A stretch of DNA of 64,000 nucleotides from Leucoraja erinacea. Its lineage: Eukaryota. Positions 9,001 through 43,069 of the stretch are shown piece after piece. The position numbers were made by a program, and so were the translations under genes. The stretch is taken from NCBI RefSeq assembly GCF_028641065.1, contig NC_073400.1, forward strand, positions 31,930,001 through 31,994,000. Reading direction: 5' to 3'. Under the pieces are notes generated by a model, which saw nothing but the letters and a program-made list of their open reading frames with translations, made no database searches and was not told the origin of the DNA. The number at the start of each line of letters is the position of its first letter. The stretch's first letter is position 1.

Positions 9001-9848
9001 TTCGGGTCCGTTGGAAAATACAAAATATTAAGAAACTACAAACTGCAGAAGTTGATTTACACCAAAGATAGACACAGAGTGCTGGAGTATCACAGCGGGT
9101 CAGGCAGCATCTGTGGAGAACATGGATAGGTGACGTTTCACAGAGTGCTGGAGTAACTCAGCGGGTCAGGCAGCATTTATGGAGCTAAGGAAATAGGCAA
9201 CGTTTCGGGTCGAAACCCTTCCGGGTTTCGGCCCGAAACGTTGCCTATTTCCAGAAGGGTTTCTGCCCAAAACGTTGCCTATTTCCTTAGCTCCATAGAT
9301 GCTGCTGCACCATAACTCAGTGGGCCAGGCAGCATCTGTGGAGAACATGGATTGGTGTCGTGACACAGAGTGCTGGAGTAACTCAGCGGGTCAGGCAGCA
9401 TCTGTGGAGAAAATGGATAGGTGACGTTTCACAGAGTGCTGGAGTAACTCAGCGGGTCAGGCAGCATCTGTGGAGAACATGGATAGGTGACGTTTCACAG
9501 AGTGCTGGAGTATCACAGCGGGTCAGGCAGCATCTGTGGAGAACATGGATAGGTGACATTTCACAAAGTGCTGGAGTAACTCAGCGGGTCAGGCAGCATC
9601 TGTGGAGAACATGGATAGGTGACGTTTCACAAAGTGCTGGAGTATCACAGCGGGTCAGGCAGCATCTCTGGAGATTAAGGTTAGATAGAGTCGAGACCAT
9701 TCAGACACCTTATAATAAAACGTGAGAAACAATTTAACCTGTTCTCATCAATTAATGTCTAAACCTGATTCTTTGAAAAAGTATTCCAATATCAAAAGGA
9801 ATTAAACAACAAAAGGTTCTTACCTGTTCCAAGAAGTAGCTTTGCCAT
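1..9848 (-). CDS. CHIA: GH18 chitinase, acidic mammalian chitinase/chitotriosidase-like, copy 1 (3' end outside window)
   Basis: GT-AG exons 9848-9824, 7624-7595, 7500-7299, 5659-5603, 3763-3598, 2734-2610, 1713-1587, 904-722, 31-<1 join in frame: [37 protein letters not shown]...[12 protein letters not shown]...NVMTYDF...[16 protein letters not shown]. Exon sizes 25/30/202/57/166/125 match vertebrate CHIA/CHIT1 structure and the catalytic DxxDxDxE motif is intact. CHIA versus CHIT1 orthology is not resolved. Confidence 0.93.
722..904 (-). CDS. CHIA: chitinase copy 1 exon 8
   Basis: 183 nt, [28 protein letters not shown]...GFLAYYE. Confidence 0.94.
950..1480 (-). mobile_element. Rex1/Babar-type LINE 3' fragment in chitinase intron 7
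   Basis: Degenerate [17 protein letters not shown]...[20 protein letters not shown]. Confidence 0.7.
1587..1713 (-). CDS. CHIA: chitinase copy 1 exon 7
   Basis: 127 nt, [42 protein letters not shown], donor GTAAGT. Confidence 0.93.
1780..2460 (-). mobile_element. CR1-type LINE 3' fragments
   Basis: [25 protein letters not shown]...[21 protein letters not shown]. Confidence 0.7.
2610..2734 (-). CDS. CHIA: chitinase copy 1 exon 6
   Basis: 125 nt, [41 protein letters not shown]. Confidence 0.92.
2880..3172 (-). mobile_element. tRNA-derived SINE (HE1-like); related copies near 3990-4295, 6060-6310, 7889-7960 (+), 15675-16060, 23740-24010 and their duplicates
   Basis: Head ggtggcgcagcggtagagttgctgcc with a B-box-like ggatcgatcc; CR1-like 3' tail ending in (ctaaa)n. 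Confidence 0.65.
3598..3763 (-). CDS. CHIA: chitinase copy 1 exon 5 (catalytic)
   Basis: 166 nt, [44 protein letters not shown]. Confidence 0.95.
4300..5330 (-). mobile_element. degenerate hAT-like DNA transposon relic (second copy about 35800-36820)
   Basis: AT-rich block; ORF 4650-4961 ends [34 protein letters not shown], resembling the hAT C-terminal dimerisation motif PxTSxxxERxFS...RR.L...NL. Confidence 0.55.
5603..5659 (-). CDS. CHIA: chitinase copy 1 exon 4
   Basis: 57 nt, [18 protein letters not shown] (GH18 SxGG motif), donor GTAAGA. Confidence 0.93.
7013..7272. mobile_element. MITE with long terminal inverted repeats (second copy about 38497-38756; related termini at 23566 and 63820)
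   Basis: gtcccactttcccaagttactcacgaattctcccgagttt ... aaactcgggagaattcgtgagtaactcgggaaagtgggac; TTA/TAA-like flanks suggest PIF/Harbinger. Confidence 0.7.
7299..7500 (-). CDS. CHIA: chitinase copy 1 exon 3
   Basis: 202 nt, [42 protein letters not shown]...LKN. Confidence 0.95.
7595..7624 (-). CDS. CHIA: chitinase copy 1 exon 2 (signal peptide [10 protein letters not shown])
   Basis: 30 nt, ttccag acceptor, GTGAGT donor, phase 1/1. Confidence 0.88.
8010..8302 (-). mobile_element. CR1 LINE 3' end with (tttctatg)n tail
   Basis: [38 protein letters not shown]; same family as 24973-26775. Confidence 0.8.
9074..9672. repeat. 66-bp tandem repeat derived from a Penelope-like 3' terminus (expanded copy about 40558-41515)
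   Basis: Unit cacagagtgctggagtaactcagcgggtcaggcagcatctgtggagaacatggataggtgacgttt, with an internal inverted block at about 9168-9310. Confidence 0.85.
9824..9848 (-). CDS. CHIA: chitinase copy 1 coding exon 1 (MAKLLLGT)
   Basis: ATG at 9848, 25 nt, donor GTAAGA; TATA box just upstream. Confidence 0.88.
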
Positions 9849-12112: not shown

Positions 12113-12687
12113 ATGGGACTGCAGAGATGGATAGGATTCATGGTCCTTGTGGAGATGGTGTGGCAAGTCTCCGCAACTGGAACAGGTCCGATCTCCAGAG
12201 AATGGGGAGAGGAAGCAAACTTGGCCGGGCGGAACGCACGGTCGTATTGGCATGTCAACAATGAACAGCTTCCAAGATGCACGGACAAGCCAGACTCTGC
12301 TGGTGATCACCCTTTAATCATTAGTCTGCAGGTTGCCGTTGTGTCTCCGAGTGGTTCTATTACGCTGCCCTGTAAACTATCCAAGAATTACAGTAAACCT
12401 ACCCTCGTCACATGGAAAAAAGACGGTGTGTTGCCATTGCAACATATCACAGTTGGTTTTCAGTGGGGTATAAGGGATCGTATCCCCGCTGGAAGTTCGT
12501 GAATAACAATATATTGAAACATCGGGACGCCTCGTTGGTCCTGTGGGGGGTACAAGAGAAAGATGCCGGGACATATACCTGCATTTGGTCCACTTCTCAT
12601 CATGGGAAATGTCATGTATTGACATGGCTGAAAATAGAGAGAAACCTCCCAATGATTCACCACGCACTCCCCCCAATCCCACACTGA
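12113..12687 (+). pseudogene. secreted single V-set Ig domain gene, copy A, frameshifted
   Basis: Matches the intact copy at 43955-44527 except for an extra TG near 12428 (gacggtgTGttgcc), giving an early stop at 12502. Confidence 0.75.
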
Positions 12688-12773
12688 CCTTTCTGTCCTG
12701 GGCCGCCTCCACTGTCAGAGTGAGGCCAAGTGCAAATTGGAGGGATAGCACTCAAATTTCACTTGGGCAGCTT

Positions 12774-20070: not shown

Positions 20071-21174
20071 GAAGGGGGTAGGGAGGAAGAGGGGGGGGAA
20101 AGTGGGGGAGGGGAGGAGGAGGGAGAGTGGGAGGAGGAGGGGGAATAGAGGGAGAGGAAGGGGGGGTTGATCCGACAATGACATCAGAATGGGATCTCAG
20201 CTCCCAATCAACAGTGTTGAGATAAGTTCCAGCCAGTGCAATGAGAGATTCCTTACATTGTTGTAAGTAGAGGCAGGGAGTGGAGGAGAAGAAATGTTAT
20301 TTAAACGTTGTGTTTAGTGGGGGAGTGCGAAAGGGGAGGCAGTGACTGAGGGTAGGGAAAAATGAGAGGGAAGGAGAGGTGATGGAGGGAGTGGAGGAGG
20401 AGAGGGGAGAGAAGGAGGAGGGTAAAGACGAGGGGGAGGGAGTGTAAGAGACTCGCGTGCGCAGTTGTGGGGTATGGGTGAGTGGTGGAATATTGCGTTG
20501 GGGGGACGGGTACATCGCAAAGGAATCTCATTTAGATTTCTTGGGAGGAGGCTTTTCATTGTGGGGGGTGGAATTGCTGAGAGGTTTCATTTACTCCTTA
20601 TTTATAAAATAATTACGATTGTGGGGAGGGGTGGGTTGGGGGCGGGGGCTCCCCGTTTCATTGTGGGGGGGTGGAGTAAGAGAGAGGTTTCATTTCCAGA
20701 ATTTTCCTTGTGGGAGGGTGGGGTGAGTATTGTGGGGTATGGGTGAGTGGTGGAATATTACGTTGGGGGAACGGGGCCCAACGGGTCCCACTTGGTCTAG
20801 TTATCATTATTTATTTAATGTTTCACGTTTACACCAATCTCTCCACCACCACGAACAAGCAGCACAAGACGCGACAAGACAGACACCATTGTATGCAGAT
20901 GCCGAGAAGTGTGATCAGCTCTGGCTGAACAACTAATCTTGTGTGTGGATTCGATAAGCAGAAGATTTAATGTCATAGTGTTATACAGTCATAGAGTGAT
21001 ACAGCATGGAAACAGGCCCTTTGGCCCAACTTGCCCACATTGGACAACATGTCCCAGCTACAATAGTCCCACCTGTCCACGTTTGGTCCATATCCCTCCA
21101 AATCTGACCGATCCATGTTCCTGTCTAGCTGTTTCTTAAACGTCGGGATAGTTTCTGCCTCAACTGCGATGTGT

Positions 21175-21517
21175 TGACCAGAACGAGACGTGGTGGAGAC
21201 ACAAGCAGGATGTGTGGGGCGCCTGGTTGGCCGCTGGCAGCTGGGATGACGTTGTTCTTGTTAAACGTTAACGGCTGATGCAACGACACGTTTGGCAGAG
21301 GGTGGAGAGGTCGCGGCTGACTCCGGCCAATGCTCCGTGAGAGGCAGTGATTGGTTGAATGTACGTGAGGGCAGACAATGAGGGGCAGGAGAAGCCGGGA
21401 GTCGGTATAAAAGGAGCGAGCGATGGCAGGAGATGAGAACAAGACCGACCCCGTCACCCTGTGTGGAGACTCCGGAGCTGGTAACCAACCCTGTGGATCC
21501 TTCAAGTGTCTGTGAGT
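21175..21517 (+). promoter_or_regulatory. V-gene promoter/exon 1, copy B (ERSE variant)
   Basis: Same block as 11226-11568; ERSE reads CGTGA-N9-ATTGG at 21336-21354. Confidence 0.7.
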
Positions 21518-22060
21518 GATGGGGGTGGGATTGTCTCTGTTCACTGTTCCCCCAGTTCAGAAGCCTGATAGCAGAGGGGAAGAAGCTGTTCCTGAGTCTG
21601 GTGGTGCGCGCTTTCAAGCTTCTGTACCTTCTGCTAGACAGGACCAGGGAGAAGGAGGAATGACCGGGGTGGGACAAGTGATGGAGCCATAGAGTCACAG
21701 CGAGACCTTCGGCCCAACTTGCCTGCGCCCACCAACTTGTCCCCATCAATACTAGACCCACCTGCCTGCGTTTGGCCCTTACCCCTCTAATCCTGTCCTA
21801 TCAATGTACCTGTCTAACTGTTTCTTAATCATTGTGATAGTACCTGCCTCAACTACCTCTTCCGGCAGCTCGTTCCAAACACCCTCCACCCTTTGTGTAA
21901 AAAAGTCACCCCTCAGTTTCCCATGAAATCTTTCCCCCCCCCTCGCCTTAAACCGATGTCCTCTGGTTCTCGATTCCCCAACTCTGGGCGGGTTCAGGGA
22001 ATGTCATCATGAATCCTACTGAGTTGCAATAAGGTGACCCATTGTTTCACCCACAGGAAC

Positions 22061-22600
22061 ATGGGACTGCAGAGATGGATAGGATTCATGGTCCTTGTGG
22101 AGATGGTGTGGCAAGTCTCCGCAACTGGAACAGGTCCGATCTCCAGAGAATGGGGAGAGGAAGCAAACTTGGCCGGGCGGAACGCACGGGCCCCTCGACA
22201 AGTCACCAATGAACAGCTTCCAAGATGCACGAACGAGTCAGATTCTGATGCCATCAGTCATCACCCATCACCGATTAACAAGAAGGTGCTCGTTGCATCT
22301 CTGGGTGGTTCTGTTACGTTGCCATGTAATTTATCCAACGTTTACAATTATCTCAGGTTTGTTGAATGGAAAAAAGATGGTGTTCAAATTGCCAGTTTCC
22401 AAGAGAGAACGTATGCGCATTATATGGGGTCTGATGTTCACTGGAAGTTCGTGCATCACGACGTCTATACGACTAGGGACGCCACGTTGCTCCTGACAGG
22501 TGTAAAAGAGGAAGATACAGGGACGTATTCCTGTGTTTGGCTCAAGTATCGTCAGAAACCGGTTTGTGAATTATTGATGCAGCTGATGATCTCTCACTGA
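22061..22600 (+). CDS. secreted single V-set Ig domain protein, copy B (179 aa)
   Basis: Acceptor cccacag|GAAC ATG; signal peptide MGLQRWIGFMVLVEMVWQVSA; GGSVTLPC...W...DATLLLTGVKEEDTGTYSC; 68 aa between canonical Cys; stop right after G strand; no TM. Confidence 0.85.
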   Translation: MGLQRWIGFMVLVEMVWQVSATGTGPISREWGEEANLAGRNARAPRQVTNEQLPRCTNESDSDAISHHPSPINKKVLVASLGGSVTLPCNLSNVYNYLRFVEWKKDGVQIASFQERTYAHYMGSDVHWKFVHHDVYTTRDATLLLTGVKEEDTGTYSCVWLKYRQKPVCELLMQLMISH

Positions 22601-23332
22601 TTCAGCAGGGCCAGTCCCAGGGTCAGTAGCAAAGTCTAGTTTAGTTTAGTTTCGTTCAGAGGTACAACAGGGAAACAAGCCCTTCGGCCACAGAGTCAAT
22701 GGGGACCAGTGATCACCCCATATACTAGTTCTATCCCACACACTAGATACAATTTACACTGACCAATTAACCTACAAACCTGCCCGTCTCTGGGGTGTGG
22801 GACGAAACCGGAGCACCCGGATTCCAAAGAGGAAGGAAGATTCCAAGGGGAGTTAGGGGCGACCGTGGCTGACAAGGGAAGTCAGGGACACTATCAAAAT
22901 AAAAGAGACCAGGTATAACGTTGCAAAGATGAGCGGAAAGCCAGGGGATTGGGTAACTCTTTTAAAGAGCAACAGAAGATAACTAAAAAAGCAATACGGG
23001 GAGAAAAGATGAGGTATGAAGGTAAGATAGCCAAGAATAGAAAGGAGGATCGTAAAAGCTTCTTCAGATATGTGAAAAAAATTAGTTCAGACTAAAATTG
23101 GTCCTTTATAGACTAAAAACTTTGGATCCGTCTTCACTAAGGAGAACACAAACAATCTCCCTGATGTACTAGTGGCCAGAGGATCTGGGGACAATGGAGA
23201 GCCAGTGGATGTAGTGTACCTGGACTTGCAGGAAGTATTTGATAAGGTCCCACATAGGAGATTAATGGGCAAAATTAGAGCACATGGTATTGGGGGAAGG
23301 GCCTGTTTCCATATTGTTTGACTCTGACACTA

Positions 23333-23565
23333 AGTAGGGAATAGTAAAGGTATAAAGATGAGCAGCGTGGAAGGTGTGAGCGTGGATCGCATGCAGTGAG
23401 GAGAACTGACCTTGCTTGCACCGGTAAATGTACGTTTAATGTAAATAAACTCTCTTCTGCCTGCCCTGAAGACAGCCGGTGTGAGTGATTCTTTGTACGC
23501 CAGCATTGAGTTGGGTGTGAACTTTGTGCAACTTTTGCTCACTACGGGCAACATCGCCGGATTAA
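23333..23565 (+). terminator. conserved downstream block with candidate poly(A) signal of the V genes
   Basis: Block recurs after all five coding exons; AATAAA at 15527, 23444, 31241, 47358 and 55865, followed by GT-rich sequence. Confidence 0.45.
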
Positions 23566-24972
23566 AGGGCCTGTCCCACGAGCATGCGACTCCATGCGGC
23601 AAGCGCGACCTAACGTGGTCACTTGAGCCGTACGGCCTCGCGGGGCCGGTCCCACTTTGATCGCCGGAGCCGTATGGAGTTGTGTGGAGCTGGTCCCGAC
23701 ATCGCACGGAGCTCTGAAAAACTGAATATGTTAGGATATGGAAACAGGCTCTTCGGCCCACCGAGTCCAACCCAACCAGTGATCACCCCTACACTAGTTC
23801 TAACCTACACACTAGGGACAATTTACTGAAGCCAATTAACCATCAAATCTACACGTCTTTGCAATCTGAAAGGAAACCAGAGCACCCGGAGGAAACCCAC
23901 ATGGTCACAGGGACAATGTACATACACTGTACAGACAGTGCCCGTAGTCACCATCGAAGGCGGGTCTCTAGCGCTGTAAGGCAGCAACTCTACCGCTGCG
24001 CCACTGTACCGCCCCTGCATTGCCCTCGTGCATTGTTAGGGCTGCTGATTAGAGTCCAGTTTTGACCCTCGTTGGGTGTCAATTGTGGTTGTCAAGGAGC
24101 TTTCTTACCTCCGTATGGAGCCTGGTCTTCCAGTTATAGACCCACACCACCCTGGCCACACTCTCTTATCACCACTACTGAGGGGAAGATACAGGAGCCT
24201 GAGAACCGTGAGCTCCAGGTTCAAGAGCAGCTTCTTCCCAGCAAGCACAAGGTTGTTGAACCAGCCTGCACAACCCCAATCACAACCCTACGCCACTCAC
24301 CACAACCCTACACAACCCTGATGGACACTGCACCACTGGTGATGCCCCACGTACGTTGTCTTGTACTATCATGGTCTGGTTTACTTGGAATAACTGAGAC
24401 CTTATTGTGTACTTATGGTGTAAGTATATAATCATGATAGGCCAGGGTAGACAGTGGAGGGCTGCCACTACAGAGCCACCCATAGACCTGATAGAATTAT
24501 ATAAAGTTACTGTGCAGACCAAGTACAAACCCAACACAATATTCCACCACTCACCCATTCCCCAACGCTATATTCCACCACTCACCCGCTCCTCAACATT
24601 ATATTCCACCACTCACTCATAGCCCCCAACTATGCAGGCGCGGCTCATTTCTCTGCATCCCCTCTTCCTCCTCTTCACCCTCCCTCTTCAATACCTAGAG
24701 AGAGAGAGAGGAGGGGGAGAGAAGGAGAGAGGCAGAGAGAAAGGGGGTAGAGAGAGAGTGGGAAGGGGTAGAGGGAGAAGGAGGGTGGTAGTGGTGGGGA
24801 GGGATTAAATACATTCTTCTCAAGCTTACCCCCAGTCTAGTTCAGTCAAAAACCACTGAGTCAAGCACTGGAACAACTAAACTTTATTTTTGGATTGTAC
24901 ATCAAATTCCCCCTCACGATACCTAAACCACTGCGGGTTCAATCCTTGTATCTGCTTGGCCAAACCCTTCAG

Positions 24973-26775
24973 GTCCCTTGCAGTCAGAAACAAGTGAATT
25001 GATCATGGGGAACAAGGATATGGCGGACCAATTGAATAACTACTTTGGTTCTGTCTTCACTAAGGAAGACATAAATAATCTGCTGGAAATAGCAGGGGAC
25101 CGGGGGTCAAATGAGATGGAGGAACTGAGTGAAATCCAGGTTAGCCGGGAAGTGGTGGTAGGTAAATTGAATGAATTAAAAGCCGATAAATCCCCAGGGC
25201 CAGATAGGTTGTATCCCAGAGTACTTAAGGAAGTAGCCCCAGAAATAGTGGATGCATTAGTGATAATTTTTCAAAACTCTTTAGATTTGGGAGTAGTTCC
25301 TGAGGATTGGAGGGTAGCTAATGTAACACCACATTTTAAAAAGAGAGGGAGAGAGAAAATGGGGAATTACAGACCAGTTAGTCTAACGTCGGTAGTGGGG
25401 AAACTGCTAGAATCAGTTATTAAAGATGGGATAGTAGCACATTTGGAAAGTGGTGAAATCATTGGACAAAGTCAGCATGGATTTATGAAGGGTAAATCAT
25501 GTCTGACGAATCTTACAGAATTTTTCGAGGATGTAACTAGTAGAGTGGATAGGGGAGAACCAGTGGATGTGGTGTATCTGGACTTCCAGAAGGCTTTCGA
25601 CAAGGTCCCACATAAGAGATTAGTATACAAACTTAAAGCACACGGTATTGGGGGTTCAGTACTGATGTGGATAGAGAACTGGCTGGCAGACAGGAAGCAA
25701 AGAGTAGGAGTAAACGGGTCCTTTTCACAATGGCAGGCAGTGACTAGTGGGGTACCGCAAGGCTCAGTTCTGGGACCCCAGCTATTTACGGTATATATTA
25801 ATGATTTGGACGAGGGAATTGAATGCAACATCTCCAAGTTTGCGGATGACACAAAGGTTGGGGCAGTGTTAGCTCTGAGTAGGATGCTAGGAGGCTGCAA
25901 GGTGACTTGGATAGGCTGGGTGAGTGGGCAAATGCATGGCAGATGCAGTATAATGTGGATAAATGTGAGGTTATCCACTTTGGTGGCAAAAACAGGAAAT
26001 TAGACTATTATCTGAATGGTGGCCGATTAGGAAAGGGGGAGATGCAACGAGACCTGGGTGTCATGGTACACCAGTCATTAAAAGTAGGCATGCAGGTGCA
26101 GCAGGCAGTGAAGAAGGCGAATGGTATGTTAGCATTCATAGCAAAAGGATTTGAGTATAAGAGCAGGGAGGTTCTACTGCAGTTGTACAGGCTCTTGGTG
26201 AGACCACACCTGGAGTATTGCGTACAGTTTTGGTCTCTTAATCTGAGGAAAGACATTCTTGCCATAGAGGGAGTACAGAGAAGGCTCACCAGACTGATTC
26301 CTGGGATGTCAGGACTTTCATATGAAGAAAGACTGGATAGACTCGGTTTGTACTCGCTAGAATTTAGAAGATTGAGGGGGGATCTTATAGAAACGTACAA
26401 AATTCTTAAGGGGTTGGACAGGCTAGATGCAGGAAAATTGTTCCCGATGTTGGGGAAGTCCAGAACAAGGGGTCACAGTTTAAGGATAATAGGAAATCTT
26501 TTGGGGCCGAAATGAGGAAAACTTTTTTCACGCAGAGAGTGGTGAATCTCTGGAATTCTCTGCCGCAGAAGGTAGTTGAAGCCAGTTCATTGGCTATATT
26601 TAAGAGGGAGTTAGATGTGGCCCTTGTGGCTAAATGGATCAGGTGGTATGGAGAGAACGCAGGTACAGGATACTGAGTTGGATGATCTGCCATGATCATA
26701 TTGAATGGCGGTGCAGGCTCGAAGGGCCGAATGGCCTAGTCCTGCACCTATTAGCTATGTTTCTATGTTTCTATG
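24973..26775 (+). mobile_element. 5'-truncated CR1 LINE (RT region, one frameshift)
   Basis: ORFs 24978-26003 and 25907-26515 ([42 protein letters not shown]); TSD ttcag; (tttctatg)n tail. Confidence 0.93.
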
Positions 26776-28973
26776 TTCAGCCTCGTGCAAGCAGAAACAC
26801 TCCAAAAGGTCACGCTGTCCCAAGGATTCTTCTAGAAGATCGACAAAGGACCTCGTGGGGGCTGCCTTTTATAAGTCCCCGAACCTTGAGGGGCCGAACT
26901 ACATAGGGGTGGTCTCTTTACAATCTAATCAAACATATTAATTACATCAGTATATTATAGACAGTTTCCCAGACCACTAACAGATCCCATACAGTGTTTC
27001 AGGAGAAGCTTCTGGAAGATGCTAACTTAACTTGAATAATGCAACATTTACCCTGGAATTCAAACAAACCTGCCAGGGCTCAACACTTTAGCCAATCAAC
27101 AAGCAGTAGGATAACTGCCTGGCACATTATATACAATATTTACAATGCTGTTACAGTAATCCAATCAACCATGCATTTACACTTCATTGGAGGTCATCTC
27201 CTTGCACGGAAATCGGCATCAAAACATGGTGGGGCACAATTCCATGGCGGCACACATGCACACGCGTGCATGCGGCACACACGCGAGGATTCGGCCGTGG
27301 GCCCTGTGGACGGTAACATCGGGAACTGACTTGGTTGGTGACCGACTCCGAACTCCAGCAACAGCAGCTTCGTCCGCCCCGAATCGTGGGACTTGAATCG
27401 GCCCGTTCGCGGGGCCTTTCATCGCCCGGCGGTGGTTTCAACATTGGTATTGATGTGGATAGAGAACTGGCTGGCCTCTTAATCTGAGGAAAGACATTCT
27501 TGCCATAGAGGGAGTACAGAGAAAGTTCACCAGACTGATTCCTGGGATGGCAGGACTTTATGGCATACTGAGTTGGATGATCAGTATAATCATATTAAAT
27601 GGCAGTGCAGGCTCGAACGGCCGAATGGCCTACTCCTGCACCTATTTTCTATGTTTCTATGGGAGCCTCGATCGCCTCGATGCAGCAGTTTGATTTTAAG
27701 CCGCTCGGGCGCTGAAAGGCCCCGCGAACGGGACGATTCTGCCCATAGAAAGCGTCTGATAAAGTCCGGAACACAAAACATGGGCGGGGGGGGAATCGTC
27801 CCCCACCTCCCAAAGCATAGGGAGACGTGCCCCCTGTTCCCCCCCCCCCCCAGGATTTCCGCCCATGGCGGTCACGATGTCTCCTTCACCGCCGCAGTCT
27901 CGACGCCTCTTTGATGGCCGCGAAAAACCCCATGTGGGGCGTAGAAGGCCGGGTCGGATAAAGCGGAAAGTTAATTTCAAAGAGGTCCTCCCCCTGACAT
28001 CACTGGAAACTGGTGGTCGACCACTCCCCCTTTGTGACATCACTCGAAGCGCGGTGAAGGTTTGCTGTTTAATAAGTTGGTTTTCACTATTTTTAAAACG
28101 CTATAACTTGTGAACTACAGCATGTAATGTGAAGTGGAGCAGTTTATTTTGTCAAAGGTGTTAATGTGATTAATAATGTGCGGAGGAGGGGAGGAGGAGA
28201 GGGGAGAGAAGGAAGAGGGTAAAGACGAGGGGGAGGGAGTGTAAGAGACTCGTCTGCGCAGTTGTGGGGTATGGGTGAGTGGTGGAATATTACGTTGGGG
28301 TGGACGGGTACATCGCAGAGGAATCTCATTTAGATTTCTTGGGAGGAGGTTTTTCATTGTGGGGGGTGGAATTGCTGAGAGGTTTCATTTACTCCTTATT
28401 TATAAAATAATTACAATTGTGGGGAGGGGTGGGTTGGGGGCGGGGGCTCCCCGTTTCATTGTGGGGGGGGGGGAGTAAGAGAGAGGTTTCAGTTCCAGAA
28501 TTTTCCTTGTGGGGGGATGGGGTGAGTATTGTGGGGTATGGGTGAGTGGTGGAATATTACGTTGGGGGAACGGGGCCCAACGGGTCCCACTTGGTCTAGT
28601 TATCATTATTTATTTAATGTTTCACGTTTACACCAATCTCTCCACCACCACGAACAAGCAGCACAAGACGCGACAAGACAGATACCATTGTATGCAGATG
28701 CCGAGAAGTGTGATCAGCTCTGGCTGAACAACTAATCTTGTGTGTGGATTCGATAAGCAGAAGATTTAATGTCATAGTGTTATACAGTCATAGAGTGATA
28801 CAGCATGGAAACAGGCCCTTTGGCCCAACTTGCCCACATTGGACAACATGTCCCAGCTACACTAGCCCCACCTGTCCACGTTTGGTCCATATCCCTCCAA
28901 ATCTGACCTATGCCTGTACCTGTCTAGCTGTTTCTTAAACGTCGGGATAGTTTCTGCCTCAACTGCGATGAGT

Positions 28974-29316
28974 TGACCAGAACGAGACGTGGTGGAGACA
29001 CAAGCAGGATGTGTGGGGCGCCTGGTTGGCCGCTGGCAGCTGGGATGACGTTGTTCTTGTTAAACGTTAACGGCTGATGCAACGACACGTTTGGCAGAGG
29101 GTGGAGAGGTCGCGGCTGACTCCGGCCAATGCTCCGTGGGAGGCAGTGATTGGTTGAATGTACGTGAGGGCAGACAATGAGGGGCAGGAGAAGCCGGGAG
29201 TCGGTATAAAAGGAGCGAGCGATGGCAGGAGATGAGAACAAGACCGACCCCGTCACCCTGTGTGGAGACTCCGGAGCTGGTAACCAACCCTGTGGATCCT
29301 TCAAGTGTCTGTGAGT
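28974..29316 (+). promoter_or_regulatory. V-gene promoter/exon 1, copy C
   Basis: Intact ERSE 29135-29153, TATA about 29205. Confidence 0.72.
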
Positions 29317-29857
29317 GATGGGGGTGGGATTGTCTCTGTTCACTGTTCCCCCAGTTCAGAAGCCTGATAGCAGAGGGGAAGAAGCTGTTCCTGAGTCTGG
29401 TGGTGCGCGCTTTCAAGCTTCTGTACCTTCTGCTAGACAGGACCAGGGAGAAGGAGGAATGACCGGGGTGGGACAAGTGATGGAGTCATAGAGTCACAGC
29501 GAGACCTTCGGCCCAACTTGCCCGCGCCCACCAACGTGTCCCCATCAATACTAGACCCACCTGCCTGCGTTTGGCCCTTACCCCTCTAATCCTGTCCTAT
29601 CAATGTACCTGTCTAACTGTTTCTTAATCATTGTGATAGTACCTGCCCCAACTACCTCTTCCGGCAGCTCGTTCCAAACACCCTCCACCCTTTGTGTAAA
29701 AAAGTCACCCCTCAGTTTCCCATGAAATCTTTCCCCCCCTCGACTTAAACCGATGTCCTCTGGTCCTCGATTCCCCAACTCTGGGCGGGTTCAGGGAATG
29801 TCATCATGAATCCTACTGAGTTGCAATAAGGTGACCCATTGTTTCACCCACAGGAAC

Positions 29858-30397
29858 ATGGGGCTGCAGAGCTGGATAGGATTCATGGTCCTTGTGGAGA
29901 TGGTGTGGCAAGTCTCCGCAACTGGAACAGGTCCGATCTCCAGAGAATGGGGAGAGGAAGCAAACTTGGCCGGGCGGAACGCACGGGCCCCTCGACAAGT
30001 CACCAATGAACAGCTTCCAAGATGCACGGACAAGTCAGATTCTGATGCCATCAGTCATCACCCATCACCGATTAACAAGAAGGTGCTCGTTGCATCTCTG
30101 GGCGGTTCTGTTACGTTGCCATGTAATATATCCAACCTTAAAAATCATCACAGGTTTGTTGAATGGATAAAAGATGGTGTTGAAATTGCCCATTTCCATG
30201 AGAGAGCGTATGCACATTATACGGGATCTGATGTTCACTGGAAGTTCGTGCATCACGACGTCTATATGACTCAGGACGCCACGTTGCTCCTGACAGGTGT
30301 AAAAGAGGAAGATAAAGGGTCGTATTCCTGTGTTTGGTCCGTGTATAGAGATAGACCGTTTTGTGAATTATTGATGCAGCTGGTGATCTCTCACTGA
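29858..30397 (+). CDS. secreted single V-set Ig domain protein, copy C (179 aa)
   Basis: Same architecture as copy B; intact ORF; DKGSYSC motif. Confidence 0.85.
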   Translation: MGLQSWIGFMVLVEMVWQVSATGTGPISREWGEEANLAGRNARAPRQVTNEQLPRCTDKSDSDAISHHPSPINKKVLVASLGGSVTLPCNISNLKNHHRFVEWIKDGVEIAHFHERAYAHYTGSDVHWKFVHHDVYMTQDATLLLTGVKEEDKGSYSCVWSVYRDRPFCELLMQLVISH

Positions 30398-33939: not shown

Positions 33940-34039
33940 NNNNNNNNNNNNNNNNNNNNNNNNNNNNNNNNNNNNNNNNNNNNNNNNNNNNNNNNNNNNN
34001 NNNNNNNNNNNNNNNNNNNNNNNNNNNNNNNNNNNNNNN
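33940..34039. other. assembly gap (100 N)
   Basis: Run of N. Confidence 1.
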
Positions 34040-34099
34040 CAAACTCGCTAAACGCCCACAGGAAAAGTTGGGTTTCTTTGCATGTGGAAGGACACTCAC

Positions 34100-37000
34100 T
34101 GGCTGAGCTGAGGAACCTCGTAGCCAGTATCGATGTTGCTCATCCCACCAGCAACGGCAGCCGAGAGCAGCAGTCGTGGCTTTCCTGCGCTTTTCCCTTC
34201 GGCCTCGAAGGCAGCCATCAGCTCCTGTGGGTCAGAGAGATCGAGGGCTCCTTTAGCAAGAGGTCAAGTCTAGTCTTAGAAAGGGTCCCGACCCAAAACA
34301 TCGCCTATCCTCTTTCCTCAGAGATGCTGCCTGACCCGCTGAGTTACTCCAACACTTTGTGTCAATTTCGATTTTAGTTCAGTTTGGTTTAGAGATGCAG
34401 CTTGGAAACAGGCCCATCGGCCGATCGAGTCCATGCCGATCAGCGATTACCCTTTCACTGTAGTTATATCCTACATACTTGGGACAATTTACTGAAGCCA
34501 ATTAACCTACAAGCCCACACATATTTGGAGTGTGGGAGGAATCAAGAGCACCTGAGGTCACAGGGAGAACGTACAAACTCCGTACAGACAGCATCCATGG
34601 TCAGGATCGATCCCGCGTCTCTGGTGCTTTGGGGCAGCAACTCTACCGCTGCGCCACCGTGTCAACCAAGAGTGGGGAAGAAACCTTTTAATCCCCACTC
34701 AAAATGGTGCTTGGTTCAAACTTTATTAAATTCTTAATTTCTGAATTCTTAAAATCTTTTGTGAAAATCTGTCCTTGGTGATCTTGACAATAAGGTTACA
34801 TTTATTGGATACATTTTCAAGTCATAGAGTTATGCAGCGTGGAAACAGACTTTTTGGCCCAACCTGCCCACACCGACCAATATGTCCCATCTGCACTAGT
34901 CCCACAAAGTGCTGGAGTAACTCAGCGGGTCAGGCAGCATCTGTGGAGAACATGGATAGGTGACGTTTCACAGAGTGCTGGAGAACTCAGCGGGTCAGGC
35001 AGCATCTGTGGAGATAAAGGATAGGTTTGGCCTGCGTTTGGCCCATTTATTTTAAAGAAACTCATAGTGAGATGTACTTGACTGAACCTGAGCCAGGACA
35101 GTGTAGAGATGCTTGTCAACGGGAGGACTTCCTCGAGATCCAGGATATTCCCAGTCGATGTCCAGACCGTCAAAGCCGTACCCTCTCAGGAAGGCGATGA
35201 CTGACTTGATGAAGATTTGCCGAGTTCCTGATGAGGCGACCATCGCGGTGAATCTGCAGGAGGGATGGATGTGGGGAGAGGAGTTAGAAATGAAATGTGC
35301 CGGAGACACAAGGAACTGTAGTAACGGCCGCTGTACTCAGTGACCCAGTGAATCTGCTGTTATATCCTATCGTGTACAGATTCACCCTCGCCTTCATTGA
35401 ATGTTCGTGGTTAAAAAATTACTCCTTTCTCCTGCTATTATCCCAAGTTTCATGTGAAATTATTATTTCTGAAAATGACATTTAGTTCAGAGATACGGCG
35501 TGGAAACATGCCCTTCGGCCCCCCCAGTCTGCACCGACCAGCGATCCCCGCTCACTAACACTATGCTACACACACAAGGGACAATTTACATTTATAACAA
35601 GCCAATTAACCTACAAATTTGTACGTCTTTGGAGTGTGGGAGCAAACTGAAGATCTCTGAGAAAACCCAGGAGGTCACAGGGAGAACATACAAACTCCGT
35701 ACAGACAGCACCCGTAGTCAGGATCGAACCTGGGTCTCTGGTGCTGTAAGTGCAATAAGGCAACAACTCTACCGCTGTGCCACACACTATTGAAAGGATT
35801 CTTTCGTAAAATTATGTTATGTTACTTTTTGGCAAGCAATATCCTATATTGTTCAAATTACAATTTGCAAACTGCTCTGTTTAATAATACTCCTGAAACA
35901 GTTCACTGCAAACTTATCCCCTCGATATTTATCTCTGTGTATATCATTACAGGATGTTTAGCCACTAAAAAACTGAAATAGGCAGGCAAAAAGGCATAAT
36001 AAAACTACAAAGAAGGCACGTAAAAGGCATTTATTGACATAAAAAGGCATGTATTTCCACCACCAAAATATGGTTAAAAATGATAATATAAAGTTATAGT
36101 ACATTAAATGACCAAAGTTGCCTGGTTGCACATAATTACTAGCATTTTTTCAAATTATCTGGTGTTAAACTATGCCGTCTGTCAGACAGAATATTCTTCA
36201 GTTGTGAAAAACTTATTTGTACCCCAGCTGAGGTCACTGGTGCATACCAGAAACAAGCTACAGACTCTATATTCACGTCGATACCTTGTGCATTACAATT
36301 ACCTTTGAGAACTTTAGCTATGTTTTGTATTTCTTCATGATCTTTGTTAGGTAAAATCACTCTCTCATAATTTCCTTGTATGTCTTTACCTACATCGCCA
36401 CATTTACGAATATCGTCAGTTACTTTGTGGAAAACCTGCAAGTTATTCACTAACGTTTCACCACCTTTCTCAAGGGAAGTGGTAGCTTGTGGGAAGTTTG
36501 CAAAATTGGAAGCAATGAATAGATGTTGGGGAAGACTGAACCAGCGGGCAGTGGCACGAAGGACAGTGGCGCCCCCAGTTTCATCCCGGAGGTGAAAATC
36601 TTCTTGTAATTTATACTATGTTAACACTTTAATAATAACATTAATATTAACGTGTTAATATAGAAAATGTCATTGTAATCATGGTACTAGACAAAATTGC
36701 ATGACCTTTTAGCAAAACAGCAAAAAAAAGGCTGATTTAGCCACTAGATCGTGAAAAAGGCATCTTGGTAAAATCATCAAAAAAGGCATGAAACGGCACA
36801 TGCCATTTATGTCAAAATTACCAAACACACCCACTGTTTACGTTGGGCACATCGAACTGCAGGTGCTGGTTTACAAAAAGAAAAGACACAAAGTGCTGGA
36901 GTAAATCAGCGGGTCAGGCAGCATCTCTAGAGAACATGGATAGGTGACGATTCGGTTCAAGCCCCTTCTTCAGGCTGAGTTACTGAGGAGTTACTCCAGT

Positions 37001-40000
37001 ACGTTGTGTCTTTCAATATTAATTCCATATCACAGTCAATTGGAAAATAACTTTTTTTAATCTAATGCTAATGTAAAAGTTTTCATCTTACTTCTGGGTG
37101 CCAAAGTTCCAGCCTCCAATGGACAGCAGAGTCTTGAGGTTTGAATTCCTTAAAAAAAATAGACAAAATGTGGTTTTAGAATGATGTTTAGAACAACAAA
37201 ATATTTTCAGAACTTCTCAGGAACTTCTGGATCTTCTGTTTTTTTCGCCCCTTTGATGTTACACTTAGTTGAGGGGATTTACCTTAGTCTGGATCTCATG
37301 GGGGTCACAGAAAATGAGGTGCAAGTTTATGCAAGAAGGCTTCATAAGCAATGGGCCAGCCTCACTCTGGGCTGAAGGGCCTATTTCCTCAATCTATGAC
37401 AATGATTCTGTTGGCCTGTCCAATAGCTTTCTCCTGAATATCCCCCTAAACCAAGTCACCTTTCAGACAGGGGAGGTGGATGAGATGAGAAAACCTTCAA
37501 CAAATGGATATGTAACGGTCATGTCAAAGACCCCGCTGACCATCGATCATCCGTTCACACCAGTGCTATTTCATCCCACTTTCTCATCCACTCCCTATGC
37601 ACTTGGGGCAAATTGTAGAGGCCAATTAATCTAGAAACCCTTTGGAATGTGGGAGAAAACCGGTAATCCAGAGAAAACCCTCACTGTCTTATGGCAAACG
37701 TGCAAACTCCACACAAACAGTGCCCGAGGTCAGGAACGAACCCAGGTCTCTGGCGCAGTGAGGCAGTGGCTCTACCCGCTGCGACACTGGGCCACCCGGT
37801 ACATACAGCAGGTGGATTCTTGCCACATACGCTTCCAAACGACTTGTTCACTTAGATCGACCATTTCGAAGAGTGAAATGGACTGTTCATTAAACACTGG
37901 ATGTCCCTTCGCTTGCAGCAAGCACCAGGGAATATTCGTGTTAACCCAATATTAACCCAATCAGACCCAAATCAGCAGGGTTCCTCTCCACCCATTTGTC
38001 TCCACCAAGCTGTCTCTGAGAAGTTAGGCATCACCTTGGTACTTAAAGTCTAAATAACCTATACGGTGGGCTTATCCCACTGAACCGTCCTCTCACCAAC
38101 TAGAGAGCAGTCCTGACCTCCCATCTACCTCATTGGAGACCCTCGGACTATATTTAATCAGACGTCATTGGACTTTATCTTGCACTAAACATTATACCCT
38201 TGACCCTGTGTCTGTACAGTGTGGACGGCCTGATTGTAACCATGTACAGTCTTTCCGCCGACTAGTTAGCACGCAACAAAAAGCTTTTTGTTGTACCATG
38301 GTACACGTGACAATAATAAACTAAACTAAATTAACTGTGGAATATGGGTTATGGAATATGGATTTGGGGAATATCCAATACAGTGACTGGTTAGCAAGCA
38401 ACAAAAACGTTTCACTGTATCAGTACAGGTGACAATGAACTAAACTGGACAATGTAAACATCGCAACATTGCCCGGCATTTGAGAAACAAGGTTAAGCCC
38501 GTCCCACTTTCCCAAGTTACTCACGAATTCTCCCGAGTTTTCCCCTTGATTCAAACTCGGAAATGCCAGCCGTTGGTATTCGGGGATATTTTTGTTTACT
38601 CGTGGACATTTTTCAACATGCTGAACAAACGTCCCGACTTACCTGATGCCCCGAGTACCTACGGCTCTACGGACTCGCTACGGACATTGTCTGAGTTTGA
38701 ATAAACGGGGAAAACTCGGGAGAATTTGTGAGTAACTCGGGAAAGTGGGACAGAGGCGTTAGTATTTATTCAGCGACTGTACTTGTTCTTCAGGCTGTTG
38801 ATTTCCTGGTAGAGTTTTGGGTCGTTCCATTCGTAGGTGGCGATCTGATTGCTCTTCATTCCAGCGAAGGCGTAGATGATGTGCGTGCAGAGGCAAGGGT
38901 CCACGCTCTGGGGCATGTATTTACCCTCTCCTGGTCTGTACTGTGCCCAGTTGGTGAAGTAACATACCAGCCTGTAGGCAGAGCCTGGGCAAGGGAGAGA
39001 CAGGGTGGTCAGGACAATGTCTCTGCGGCAATCACACAAAGCAAAGCAAAGCAAGGCTGCAAATGCACAAAGACTCACCCAGTTGCAGGCAGGCCAGTAA
39101 GACCACCGCTGGAACAGAAAACAGAGAACAGCGTGTTAGGATTATGACAAACCGTAATAAATCAGGTGTTACGGGAAGAAGACAGGAGAATGGGGTTGAG
39201 AGGGAAAGGTAGATCAGCCATGATTGTGTGGCTAGAGCGCACTTGATGGGCCGAATGGCCTAATTCTGCTCCTATTACGTATGAAATTATGAAACCTTGG
39301 CTGTATTATGGCCTCTACACAATGACACTGTTATGTAAGTGGTTGGGAAACTATGAAGATCTATCTTGTGGGCGGCACAGTGGAGCAGTGGTAGAGTTGC
39401 TGCCTCACAGCGCCAGAGACCCAGGTTTGATCTTGACTATGGGTGTTGAACGTGTGTGGAATTTGTACATCAACCCTGTTATGCTTACTATTAGAAACAT
39501 AGAAACATAGAAATTAGGTGCAGGAGTAGGCCATTCGGCCCTTCGAGCCTGCACCGCCATTCAATATGATCATGGCTGATCATCCAACTCAGTATCCCGT
39601 ACCTGCCTTCTCTCCATACCCCCCTGATCCCCTTAGCCACAAGGGCCACATCTAACTCCCTCTTAAATATAGCCAATGAACTGGCCTCGACTACCCTCTG
39701 TGGCAGAGAGTTCCAGAGATTCACCCCTCTCTGTGTGAAAAAAGTTCTTCTCATCTCGGTTTTAAAGGATTTCCCACTTATCCTTAATATTCTAGTATAA
39801 ATTTGATTGTTCTGTTTCTGGTACATATGACAATAACACTCTTAACTCCCTCCCCCTGTGACAAAGTGGGTTTTCTCCAGGAGCTCTGGTTTCCTCCCAA
39901 ATCCCAAAGATGTGAAGGATTGAAGGTTAATTGTCCCTCTGTAAAATTGCTCCTCGTGTGGAGGGAGTCGTTGCATAAGTGGGATAACATGGGAATAGTG

Positions 40001-41690
40001 TGAAAGGCTGAACAATGGTCGGCATGAACTCTGTGGGCCGAAGGGCCTTGTTTCCATACTGTATCTCTAAACTAAACCTTTCCTATCCATGTACTCATCC
40101 AAATATCTGTTAAATGTTATTATACTTGCCTCATCTGCCTCCTCTGGCAGATCGTTCCATATACTCACCACCCTCTGGGCAACAGGTTAGAGTCATAGTC
40201 ACACAGCGCAGAAACAGGCCCTTTGGCCCAATTTGTCCATGCTGACCAAGATGCCCCATCTAAGCCTGTCCCAGTGGCCCCTGGATTCACCTTTAAATCT
40301 TTGCCCTCTCACATTCAGTGTCAATGCCCTGTAGTTTTAGACTCCCCTTCCCTGGGGAAAGGCAGAGACCATCCTTCATATCTCTGCCCCTCATGATTTT
40401 CTAAATGTCTCTGAAGATTTTCACAGAGAGCTGGAGTAATTCAGCAGGTCAGGCAACTTCTCCGGAGAGAAGGAATGGGTGACGTTTCGGGTCCGTTGGA
40501 AAATACAAAATATTAAGAAACTACGAACTGCAGAAGTTGATTTACACCAAAGATAGACACAAAGTGCTGGAGTATCACAGCGGGTCAGGCAGCATCTGTG
40601 GAGAACATGGATAGGTGACGTTTCACAGAGTGCTGGAGTAACTCAGCGGGTCAGGCAGCATTTATGGAGCTAAGGAAATAGGCAACGTTTCGGGTCGAAA
40701 CCCTTCCGGGTTTCGGCCCGAAACGTTGCCTATTTCCAGAAGGGTTTCTGCCCAAAACGTTGCCTATTTCCTTAGCTCCATAGATGCTGCTGCACCATAA
40801 CTCAGTGGGCCAGGCAGCATCTGTGGAGAACATGGATAGGTGACGTTTCACAGAGTGCTGGAGTAACTCAGCAGGTCAGGCAGCATCTGTGGAGAACGTG
40901 GATAGGTGACGTTTCACAGAGTGCTGGAATAACTCAGCAGGTCAGGCAGCATCTGTGGAGAACATGGATAGGTGACGTTTCACAGAGTGCTGGAGTAACT
41001 CAGCGGGTCAGGCAGCATTTATGGAGCTAAGGAAATAGGCAACGTTTCGGGTCGAAACCCTTCCGGGTTTCGGCCCGAAACGTTGCCTATTTCCAGAAGG
41101 GTTTCTGCCCAAAACGTTGCCTATTTCCTTAGCTCCATAGATGCTGCTGCACCATAACTCAGTGGGCCAGGCAGCATCTGTGGAGAACATGGATAGGTGA
41201 CGTTTCACAGAGTGCTGGAGTAACTCAGCGGGTCAGGCAGCATCTGTGGAGAACGTGGATAGGTGACGTTTCACAGAGTGCTGGAATAACTCAGCGGGTC
41301 AGGCAGCATCTGTGGAGAACATGGATAGGTGACGTTTCAGAGTGTTGGAGTAACTCAGCGGGTCAGGCAACATCTGTGTGGAGAACATGGATAGGTGACA
41401 TTTCACAAAGTGCTGGAGTAACTCAGCGGGTCAGGCAGCATCTGTGGAGAACATGGATAGGTGACGTTTCACAAAGTGCTGGAGTATCACAGCGGGTCAG
41501 GCAGCATCTCTGGAGATTAAGGTTAGATAGAGTCGAGACCATTCAGACACCTTATAATAAAACGTGAGAAACAATTTAACCTGTTCTCATCATTTAATGT
41601 CTAAACCTGATTCTTTGAAAACGCATTCCAATATCAAAAGGAATTAAACAACAAAAGGTTCTTACCTGTTCCAAGAAGTAGCTTTGCCAT
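34100..41690 (-). CDS. CHIA: GH18 chitinase copy 2 (exons 1-6; remainder lost in assembly gap; allele or paralogue)
   Basis: Exons 41690-41666, 39108-39079, 38984-38783, 37148-37092, 35253-35088, 34224-34100. Same protein as copy 1; I see three silent changes. Ends at the N gap. Confidence 0.88.
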
Positions 41691-43069
41691 CTTGTTACTG
41701 TTGCTGACTAGACCTGAGCTGCCTCTTTTATACAATGAGCTTATCACGAACAATAGTCCAATGTGTTTGTCGTTCGCTTTATCAGAGTGAAAGGGCAGTC
41801 ACGATGATCCTCCTGCTATTTACAAAGGGAAAATAATAGTTCTTATCTTGACTTCAATATTTTCTCTTCAATAATACCTCGTCCCCTGTTCAATGTCATT
41901 CAGATTGTTCACCTTCATTTTCACCTCTCTGTTTCTGAGCTTGATTGGAAATGACTTGGAAACGTAGAATCATGGAAAGTAGGCGCAGGAGTAGGGCATT
42001 TAGCCAGCACCGCCATTCAATTATGATCATAGCTATTTGTCCACAATTAGTACCCTGTTCCTGCTTTCTCCCCATATCCCTTGATTCCATTAGCCCTATG
42101 AGCTAACTCTCTCTTGAAAACATCCAGTGAATTGGCCTCCACTGCCTTCTGAGGCATAGAATTCCACAGATTCATAACTCTGGGTGAAAATGTTTTTCCT
42201 CATTTCAGTCCTAAATGACCTACCCTTTATTCTTAAACTGTGGCCCCTGATTCTGGATTCCCCCAACATCGGGGACATTTTTTCTGCATCTTGCCTGTCC
42301 AAATCCCTTAAGAATTTGTATGTTTCTGTAAGATCCCCTCTCATTCTTCTGAATTCCAGTGAATATCAGCCCAGTCGACCCATTCTTTCATCATATGACA
42401 GTCTCGCCATCCCAGGAATTAACCTGGTGAACCTACGCTGCATTCCCTCAATAGCAAGAATGCCCTTCCTCAAATTACAAGATCAAAACTGCTGGTGTGG
42501 TCTTACCATGGCCCTATATAACTGCAGTAGGACCTCCTTGCCCCGCTTCACAAATCCTCTCACTATGAAGGCCAACATGCCATTTGCTTTCTTCACTGCC
42601 TGCTGTACCTGCATGTTTATTTTTAGTGACTGGTGTACAAGCACACCGAGGTCTCATTGCATATTCCCTTTTCCTAATCTGACAACATTCAGATAATAAT
42701 CTACATTCTCCCCATAAGCTCTGACACCTGTACAAATCAACAATCTATCCATCTCTGCATTAAAAATATCCGTCGACTTGGCCTCCACAGACAGCCTTCC
42801 ATGGCAATGAATTCCACAGATTCACCACATTCTTACTAAAGAAATTCCTCTTCATCTCCTTCTTAAACGACCACCCTTTAATTCTGAGGCTGTGACCTCT
42901 TGTCCGAGACTCCCCCACTAGTGGATTACATGCAGGCTGAAGAGATTAGTTTAACTTCTTGGCATCATGGTCAACACGGACATTGTGGGCCGAAGGGCCT
43001 GTACCTGTGCTGCACTATTCCATGTTCTATGTTACATCGTCTTCTCAATTACAGTGGAGCGGGTAGGTG

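Follow-up and report, generated by a model that had tools for sequence, protein, structure and literature searches.

Divergent V-domain cores in a conversion-homogenised tandem array of predicted secreted genes in the skate Leucoraja erinacea

Introduction

The peptide-binding exons of class I and class II major histocompatibility complex (MHC) genes show more nonsynonymous than synonymous divergence (dN > dS) at their binding sites, lie among homogenised introns and exist as mosaic block variants. Genes of the conotoxin and defensin type join a conserved prepro region to a hypervariable mature peptide. The VCBPs of amphioxus and Ciona are secreted, link two V domains to a chitin-binding domain and are diverse in the germline, and the NITR and CD300/pIgR-like families of fish are membrane receptors with signalling tails, whose tandem V exons form conversion mosaics with variable loops like the complementarity-determining regions (CDRs). 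Here we analyse a stretch of 64,000 nucleotides from the skate Leucoraja erinacea (NCBI RefSeq assembly GCF_028641065.1, contig NC_073400.1, positions 31,930,001 to 31,994,000 of the forward strand; hereafter the window, numbered from its first letter) that holds a tandem array of small V-domain genes. Using tblastn with copy B over the window, we found five complete V frames on the plus strand, which we call A, B, C, A2 and B2, the last two in the second copy of a duplicated block. Our main comparison is between B and C, which stand 7.8 kb apart on the same contig.

The V-coding exon of the skate genes is, like the MHC exons, divergent amid homogenised DNA, but fold and function are unrelated, the copies are tandem paralogues and the statistics are weaker. 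As in genes of the conotoxin and defensin type, an invariant leader and pro region stands beside a variable domain, here with the boundary inside one exon. The array recalls the VCBPs in its predicted secreted V domains and in its genomic link to chitin biology, a GH18 chitinase being its neighbour. In contrast to VCBPs, each skate gene encodes one V domain without a chitin-binding domain, and the chitinase has its own gene on the opposite strand; unlike the NITR and CD300/pIgR-like genes, the skate genes end after the V domain. Multigene families of V domains are well known to evolve in this manner. The skate family itself appears undescribed so far, as a literature search turned up nothing relevant on a ray-and-skate V-domain family.

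By profile and by fold, the skate domain finds its best matches among the V domains of nectin, PVR (CD155), TIGIT and CD226. As set out in one published account (PMC10486284), nectin/PVR family members bind through an AX6G 'lock' in the C'-C'' region and a T(Y/F)P 'key' in the FG loop. The skate genes differ from this family in ending after one V domain and in having an extra cysteine pair (Cys56/Cys169) and a tandem array with a common 5' cassette.

Results

An island of divergence in the V-coding part

A preliminary description of this DNA had counted 24 amino-acid-changing codons against 5 silent ones between B and C, with 21 of the 24 after the first cysteine of the domain, and we obtained exactly these counts. 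The 21 changes run from L91I to M176V, after Cys89; the three earlier ones are R5S, N58D and E59K, the codons with synonymous differences only are G2, G82, A119, G123 and R164. Double changes are found in 7 of the 29 codons that differ. Taken alone, the ratio of 24:5 is not significantly above the neutral expectation, because about 78% of the sites are non-synonymous (N = 418, S = 119).

The near-identity of introns and flanks, also claimed before, was confirmed. Over 3045 non-coding sites (upstream DNA, exon 1, intron and 3' flank), B and C differ at 53 (1.74%), compared with 34 of 408 sites (8.33%) in codons 44-179 (Fisher p = 3.5e-11). The corresponding values are 9.31% vs 1.61% for B and B2 (p = 3e-14) and 3.68% vs 2.14% for C and B2 (p = 0.046). 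The chitinase gene in the same duplicated block behaves ordinarily: its two copies encode identical proteins and differ by 2 silent changes in 582 nt of coding sequence (five pieces), against 118 of 7545 sites (1.56%) across the whole aligned block. The third silent change and the sixth exon of the earlier chitinase comparison were not reproduced. The V-coding part of the skate genes is a real island of divergence, well above chance.

Placement of the changes on the predicted V domain

We based the protein analysis on the single-exon (exon 2) frame and mapped residues onto an AlphaFold model made with nine sequences (mean predicted local distance difference test score 66, with 70-92 as the means of blocks within the V domain), which has all strands from A to G, C' (108-114) and C'' (118-121) among them. 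The loop strings listed in the preliminary description are all present in copies B, C, B2 and A/A2, namely NLSNVYNYLR, NISNLKNHHR and KLSKNYSKPT in the BC loop, QIASFQERT, EIAHFHERA and AIATYHSWF in the C'-C'' region, and LKYRQKPV, SVYRDRPF, SAYRDRPV and STSHHGK in the FG loop. The clustering of changes in these loops also stood up, with 7 of 14 residues of the BC, C'C'' and FG loops changed between B and C as against 14 of 91 others (p = 0.007). In the predicted fold, changes would affect 10 of 40 strand residues of the front sheet (GFCC'C'') and none of the 21 of the back sheet (ABED; p = 0.009), although the back sheet does vary among the older paralogues. Along the linear sequence, a nearest-neighbour test on the 21 V-domain changes gave no significant clustering (p = 0.11).

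The changed columns are also more variable in six other paralogues (1.66 vs 1.12 bits, p = 0.003), and 1 of 20 family-invariant columns is altered (R139Q). Changes surround the positions that align with the PVR lock AX6G (111-118) and key T(Y/F)P (162-164), and Tyr163 of B, C and B2 aligns with the aromatic residue of the key.

Nonsynonymous excess on the front face

We estimated dN/dS by counting (Nei-Gojobori) and by likelihood (GY94, pairwise and for three taxa), using three close sequences and one distant one (Table 1). For the V domain of C and B2 alone, GY94 found zero silent changes and no finite dN/dS (p = 0.10).

Table 1 Estimates of dN/dS for the close copies of the V-domain gene.
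Method	Comparison	Region	dN/dS	p
Nei-Gojobori	B-C	whole gene	1.61	0.27
Nei-Gojobori	B-C	V domain	1.72	0.14
Pairwise GY94	B-C	whole gene	2.59	0.062
Pairwise GY94	B-C	codons 44-179	3.42	0.028
Pairwise GY94	B-C	codons 74-179	3.01	0.057
Pairwise GY94	B-B2	three ranges	2.0-2.6	0.11-0.15
Pairwise GY94	C-B2	whole gene, codons 44-179	1.7-2.1	0.31-0.41
Star tree	three copies	whole gene	2.21	0.06
Star tree	three copies	codons 44-179	2.50	0.046
Star tree	three copies	codons 74-179	3.14	0.044
Star tree	three copies	leader	0.79	not significant

The V domain was further divided into a front partition of 54 codons (the predicted GFCC'C'' strands plus the BC, C'C'' and FG loops) and the remaining 51 codons, a split that was fixed before any dN/dS value was viewed. 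By counting, B and C have a dN of 0.201 and a dS of 0.066 in the front partition (ratio 3.05, p = 0.085), and a dN of 0.040 and a dS of 0.073 in the rest (ratio 0.55). By likelihood, the ratios are 7.75 for the front (p = 0.009) and 0.71 for the rest. Diversifying selection is expected to give a dN/dS significantly above 1 at a class of sites, whichever method is used and with recombination allowed for; counting gave 1.61-3.05 without significance (p = 0.085-0.27) and likelihood 2.2-7.75 (p = 0.009-0.06).

The same data bear on a neutral history, in which drift and conversion act without positive selection, constraint is weak, changes gather at surface positions that tolerate them, conversion evens out the flanks and reshuffles blocks, and the island is an older or imported neutral tract. 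Such a history sits poorly with a front dN five times that of the rest at equal dS (p = 0.0002-0.0006) and three times its own dS (p = 0.009 in the likelihood test), and with a back sheet left unchanged between B and C. It would also have to account for a ratio of amino-acid-changing to silent differences between B and C (27.5:4.5) that exceeds the long-term ratio of the family (82:33).

A homogenised cassette beside divergent V cores

The 5' cassette of about 1 kb is 97-100% identical in the five full copies. A and B are 94-100% identical over the stretch -900 to +100, and beyond either edge the DNA can no longer be aligned (35-51%). A2 and B have no differences in codons 1-43 (leader dS = 0), and their adjoining V domains differ with a dS of 0.75 and a dN of 0.45. 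Leader and intron 99-100% identical beside a dS of 0.75, with block boundaries between them, are the mark of concerted evolution. Since the silent sites of the leader, the intron and the promoter are identical as well, the conservation of the leader reflects concerted evolution and not selection on the peptide alone; and because conversion homogenises leader and promoter, the identity of the flanks is no clock for the age of the genes.

Within the B/C/B2 subfamily, a three-way comparison gave 46 private sites for B, 41 for C and 41 for B2, and these are grouped into blocks. At 19 variable sites in a row, B is odd and C and B2 are identical (permutation p <= 1e-5); another run comprises 8 B2-private sites in codons 39-71 (p = 0.006), and a few C-private sites lie in codons 153-176. 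Codons 44-47 (54605-54616) encode AYFK in B2 and APRQ in both B and C, and four adjacent letters within codons 44-46 of B2 match the A subfamily (SYWH); judged from the letters, this micro-tract looks like a short ectopic conversion between subfamilies.

We searched for donors of the B and C tracts among the six other annotated paralogues and A2 and found no match. Residues K95, H97, H98, I104, E109, H112, A117, T122, Q139, D165 and R166 of C/B2 occur in none of the six paralogues. As most C/B2-type residues are found in no annotated paralogue, no known donor explains the C/B2 tract, which also counts against a neutral import. When the sites are polarised with A2, B keeps the A2 letter at 11, C/B2 at 8 and neither at 9, so neither type of V core can simply be called derived.

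Weighing selection against drift, conversion and hypermutation

We propose that B and C, as tandem paralogues, belong to a family of small, single-V-domain proteins of rays and skates that are predicted to be secreted. Gene conversion or unequal exchange would keep all copies identical from the promoter through exon 1 and the intron to the leader, and within the B/C/B2 subfamily exchange would homogenise the entire 3.6-kb unit. The V core would escape this homogenisation, and two older types, B-type and C/B2-type, would persist with lineage-specific patches. By analogy with nectin/PVR proteins, the GFCC'C'' sheet and the BC, C'C'' and FG loops, where the types differ, may correspond to the lock-and-key face, and selection for different ligand specificity would keep, and would have driven, the front-face differences. 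We give such selection for different binding roughly an even chance of being the cause and favour it over drift, and the evidence for it is suggestive, not decisive.

A number of observations weigh against selection. Counting yields a significant dN/dS in no region, be it the whole gene, the V domain or the front partition, and the values for whole gene and whole domain are borderline (p = 0.03-0.27). The likelihood p values of 0.009-0.06 are uncorrected over about ten tests, rest on 2-5 silent changes and can be inflated by recombination and by double changes within a codon, and the structural partition derives from the AlphaFold model. Comparisons between the older subfamilies (A2 vs B or C) gave a dN/dS of 0.53-0.75 in both partitions, with no front-face excess. 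Moreover, 17 of the 24 changes and 4 of the 5 silent differences fall on the B branch, with identical letters in C and B2, and most of the B-branch changes (codons 82-166) form one block. Because the blocks are shared by C and B2, the 24 changes are not independent, and there are effectively two V-core types only, which go back to few independent events. The silent divergence of the V part, 0.066-0.073 and equal in both partitions, is 3.5-4.5 times the flank rate (p = 0.008-0.035). With silent sites at about four times the flank rate, the V cores are older than their surroundings or imported, and fast mutation after duplication is not the explanation. The otherwise invariant Arg139 is altered in C/B2, which together with a frameshift in copy A fits relaxed constraint.

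Data from outside the assembly add to the points on this side. The B-type protein was absent from the protein collection in word-based and profile searches. RNA reads were taken from one bulk oligo-dT run (about 5%) and one single-cell run (about 1%) with the same species label, and read over the interval 20900-23900. In both runs exon 1 and 22011-22616 had zero depth, and whatever RNA depth there was lay on high-copy repeats; since the leader is shared by all copies, no member of the family was detected in those samples, which, being subsampled, do not prove that the genes are silent. Contigs from DNA run X2 cover the shared flanks and give the B-type core a depth of 0-4 at 22314-22515, at a likeness of 95% and with the limit that contigs cannot prove absence. 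In run X1, which carries another organism label, the depth is 72 at 22314-22414, with the B2 letters at 22266 and 22271. The B type may therefore be polymorphic, by presence and absence or as alleles.

Many of these points are equally what drift with conversion and no positive selection would lead one to expect: a counting dN/dS not significantly above 1, V-part silent divergence far above that of the flanks, differences in blocks, the micro-tract shared by B2 and A2, the loss of Arg139, the broken frame of copy A and RNA samples in which no reads were seen. The long-term dN/dS of 0.6 points the same way. Beside the front-face pattern and the lack of an annotated donor, drift is opposed by the preservation of the open frame, of all four cysteines and of Trp103, Tyr156 and Asp152 in B, C, B2 and A2. 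We regard the neutral history as quite possible, though short of probable. The preliminary description had named conversion from an old neutral paralogue as an outcome that would speak against selection, and part of that pattern is indeed present, in the blocks and in the raised silent divergence of the V part. Its proposal of an arms race at a ligand-binding surface retains the island, the placement on the front face and loops and the front dN/dS in its favour, and is weakened by the borderline overall dN/dS, the blocks and the greater age of the V cores.

Raised divergence at silent and amino-acid-changing sites alike, with many double-hit codons, would also be produced by targeted hypermutation of the V-coding part in the germ line, through a deaminase-type or local mutator. 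Transitions and transversions number 16:18 in the V part and 35:18 in non-coding DNA, as a mutator with its own spectrum might leave them, but the difference is not significant (p = 0.12-0.15). The changes follow the structure and not the position in the sequence, and the exons of A and A2 show no substitution in 570 nt where about 7 would be expected at the flank rate (p = 0.001). We consider hypermutation highly improbable.

Family identity of the V domain

The products of B and C match the Pfam V-set profile (PF07686) with 30.9 and 35.4 bits (cut-off 26) and the Pfam ig profile with 36.5 and 31.4 bits (cut-off 21.8). They contain the V-set core of a B-strand cysteine, a C-strand tryptophan and an F-strand cysteine, together with strands C' and C''. 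A word-based protein search returned six Leucoraja proteins labelled 'uncharacterized', all from a single 33.95-Mb record, together with one protein of Rhinoraja longicauda. An exhaustive profile search, which also recovered P0001 as the family's own representative, added a 'nectin-1-like' protein of Narcine bancroftii, a clear single-domain relative with the same layout; the other matches listed were mostly long proteins matched at several stretches, of which one, P0051, was inspected by sequence. As the Narcine relative shares the layout, the family goes back at least to the divergence of skates from electric rays.

Among solved structures, the best profile matches are JAML, PVR, CD226, nectin-2 and TIGIT (PVR D1, E = 1e-9). 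Foldseek on the AlphaFold model placed nectin-1 D1 (E = 2.8e-9), PVR D1 and nectin-2 D1 at the top. Identity in these profile and fold matches is 19-28%, and the ESM Atlas returned generic V-set clusters only. The lock motif AX6G occurs in the skate proteins P0005 and P0007 and in P0055 of Narcine, and is missing from B, C, B2, A2, P0002, P0004 and P0006. The key motif T(Y/F)P was found in the FG loop of none of nine skate sequences, and the Narcine protein has TYP at 197. Seven skate members, B, C, B2 and A2 among them, have thus lost both motifs, whereas the Narcine relative keeps both. We found no C-type domain, transmembrane segment or tail, the frame stopping right after the G strand in proteins of 175-221 amino acids with one Ig domain. 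The skate genes are nectin/PVR-derived V domains that depart from that family in their motifs and in having neither a multi-domain ectodomain nor a membrane anchor.

Two other assignments were considered. A rearranging immunoglobulin or T-cell receptor V segment is ruled out, as the G strand lies within the same exon ahead of the stop; in none of B, C, B2 and A2 was a recombination-signal heptamer (CACAGTG/CACTGTG) found between -120 and +1500 relative to the stop. Membership of the VCBPs is likewise ruled out by the presence of one V domain and no other Pfam domain.

Gene anatomy and protein layout

The product of B consists of a predicted signal peptide, a segment with RNAR/RAPR, a linker with Cys56 and the V domain at 74-178 (gene coordinates in Table 2). 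The signal peptide suggests that proteins of the B and C type are secreted. The NCBI models add 31 N-terminal residues (MAGDENK...) from exon 1, and the Rhinoraja model begins at MGLQ. The ATG of MAGDENK stands about 10 nt downstream of the TATA box and is probably upstream of the transcription start; given this spacing, the extension is probably neither transcribed nor translated, and the protein would start with the MGLQ signal peptide.

At least one RxxR motif (RNAR and/or R[AEV]PR) is present at positions 40-46 in 9 of 9 skate sequences (22178-22198 in B), and RQVR stands at a similar place in the Narcine relative. The motif suggests a candidate convertase cleavage site ahead of the mature domain. 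Cys89, Trp103 and Cys158 are invariant in all nine sequences, as are Cys56 of the linker and Cys169 after the FG loop.

Some further residues distinguish the two types. B has an extra N-glycosylation sequon, N58-E-S (22232-22240), where C and B2 have D58; another sequon, N90-x-S, stands where the BC loop begins and is common to B, C and B2. C and B2 have gained four histidines in the BC loop and C' strand (Y97H, L98H, S112H and Q114H, in codons 97-114; 30146-30199 in C and 54764-54817 in B2), each reached by a different codon path, which brings the histidine count to 11 vs 7 in B. P0005-P0007 have none. The residues suggest a surface that may be sensitive to metal or pH.

Layout of the locus

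Self-comparison of the window showed that a block of about 31.5 kb occurs twice, in colinear copies of 97-98.8% identity (Table 2). The first copy alone has a 2.8-kb long interspersed nuclear element (LINE) between B and C, and a second difference is another insertion after 59036. Using the first 33 residues of P0001, tblastn found exon 1 in seven copies, at 11474, 21423, 29222, 33910, 43316, 53837 and 58850, of which 33910 (cut by the gap) and 58850 lie beyond the five genes. The homology of the seventh gene copy, that with exon 1 at 58850, stops at 59036 within the intron. Past this point, an open reading frame (ORF) on the minus strand (59741-60220) encodes an aspartic-protease-like frame (DTG) typical of long terminal repeat (LTR) retrotransposons. 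The DNA after 59036 was thus probably inserted into the intron of this seventh copy.

Table 2 Features of the V-domain array and its neighbours, in window coordinates.
Feature	Positions	Strand	Remarks
First copy of the ~31.5-kb block	2550-33939		
Second copy of the ~31.5-kb block	34040-59036		
Assembly gap	33940-34039		100 N; junction of the two block copies (self-comparison)
GH18 chitinase copy 1	2609-9848	-	coding pieces 9822-9848, 7298-7501, 5602-5658, 3598-3765, 2609-2734
GH18 chitinase copy 2	34040-41780	-	second block copy
Gene A	12113-12700	+	2-bp GT insertion at ~12426-12427 vs A2 (44268 region) breaks frame
5' cassette of gene B, ~1 kb	21161-22190	+	promoter, exon 1, intron, leader/pro codons 1-43
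TATA box of gene B	21406-21413		
Exon 1 of gene B	21423-21511	+	MAGDENK... frame used in NCBI models; donor CT/GTGAGT after 21511
Intron of gene B	ends at 22047		536 nt; acceptor cccacag/G
Exon 2 of gene B	22048-22600	+	whole protein; ATG 22061, stop 22598-22600, 179 codons
Divergent V-core tract of B, codons 82-168	22304-22564	+	B unlike both C and B2
Reverse-transcriptase ORFs of the LINE	24978-26515		
Gene C exon 2 coding sequence	29858-30397	+	product identical to residues 32-210 of P0001 (LOC129708939)
V-core tract of C, codons 82-168	30101-30361	+	codons 72-152 identical to B2
Gene A2	43955-44527	+	P0003, LOC129708937; intact, 190 codons from MGLQ; outgroup subfamily
Gene B2	54476-55015	+	P0157, LOC129708938; positional counterpart of B in second block copy; C-type V core plus own patch at codons 39-71

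The second block copy begins exactly at the N gap, right where homology to 2550 starts. Such a junction, together with the colinearity, raises the question of an assembly artefact in which the second copy is the other haplotype placed in tandem, B and B2 are alleles and the loci are overcounted. The exons of A and A2 differ by the 2-bp indel alone, the B-type protein is not annotated, and the near-absence of the B-type core from the X2 contigs with its presence in X1 would suit a haplotype of this kind, as would a polymorphic B type. On the other side, the divergence between the copies is 1.2-2.9% with many indels, which is high for alleles, and contig data cannot show absence. We hold the artefact to be improbable. 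The comparison of B with C does not depend on it, since both genes lie on one contig.

The broken frame of copy A could mark a pseudogene or a null allele, or could stem from an error of assembly; the GT insertion sits in a short GT run, and apart from it no substitution separates the exons of A and A2 over about 570 nt, with flanks that differ by about 1.2%. The GH18 chitinase stands head-to-head with copy A. Between the 5' end of the chitinase and copy A or A2 there is a tandem array of a 66-nt repeat (9247-9739 and 40732-41581), with unequal copy numbers in the two blocks.

Discussion

The broadest interpretation of the locus would be a germline-diversified repertoire, not described before, of secreted single V domains derived from nectin/PVR, a kind of 'innate nanobodies'. 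A conversion-homogenised cassette of promoter and leader would drive many V cores, the lock-and-key face would be remodelled under selection, the four histidines recently gained by the C/B2 type could make its binding depend on metal or pH, and the proteins may act in mucosal defence together with the neighbouring chitinases. Taken as a whole, we think this interpretation rather unlikely.

As it stands, the pattern is the one expected for tandem V-domain families, and the statistical case for selection is modest. The array also illustrates cleanly that, where arrays undergo conversion, near-identical introns are no guide to the age of paralogues. If the proposed account is true, the skate genes would represent a new secreted V-domain family in cartilaginous fish that evolves in the manner of immune recognition without rearrangement, and the adhesion interface of the nectin/PVR family would have been re-used for variable recognition.

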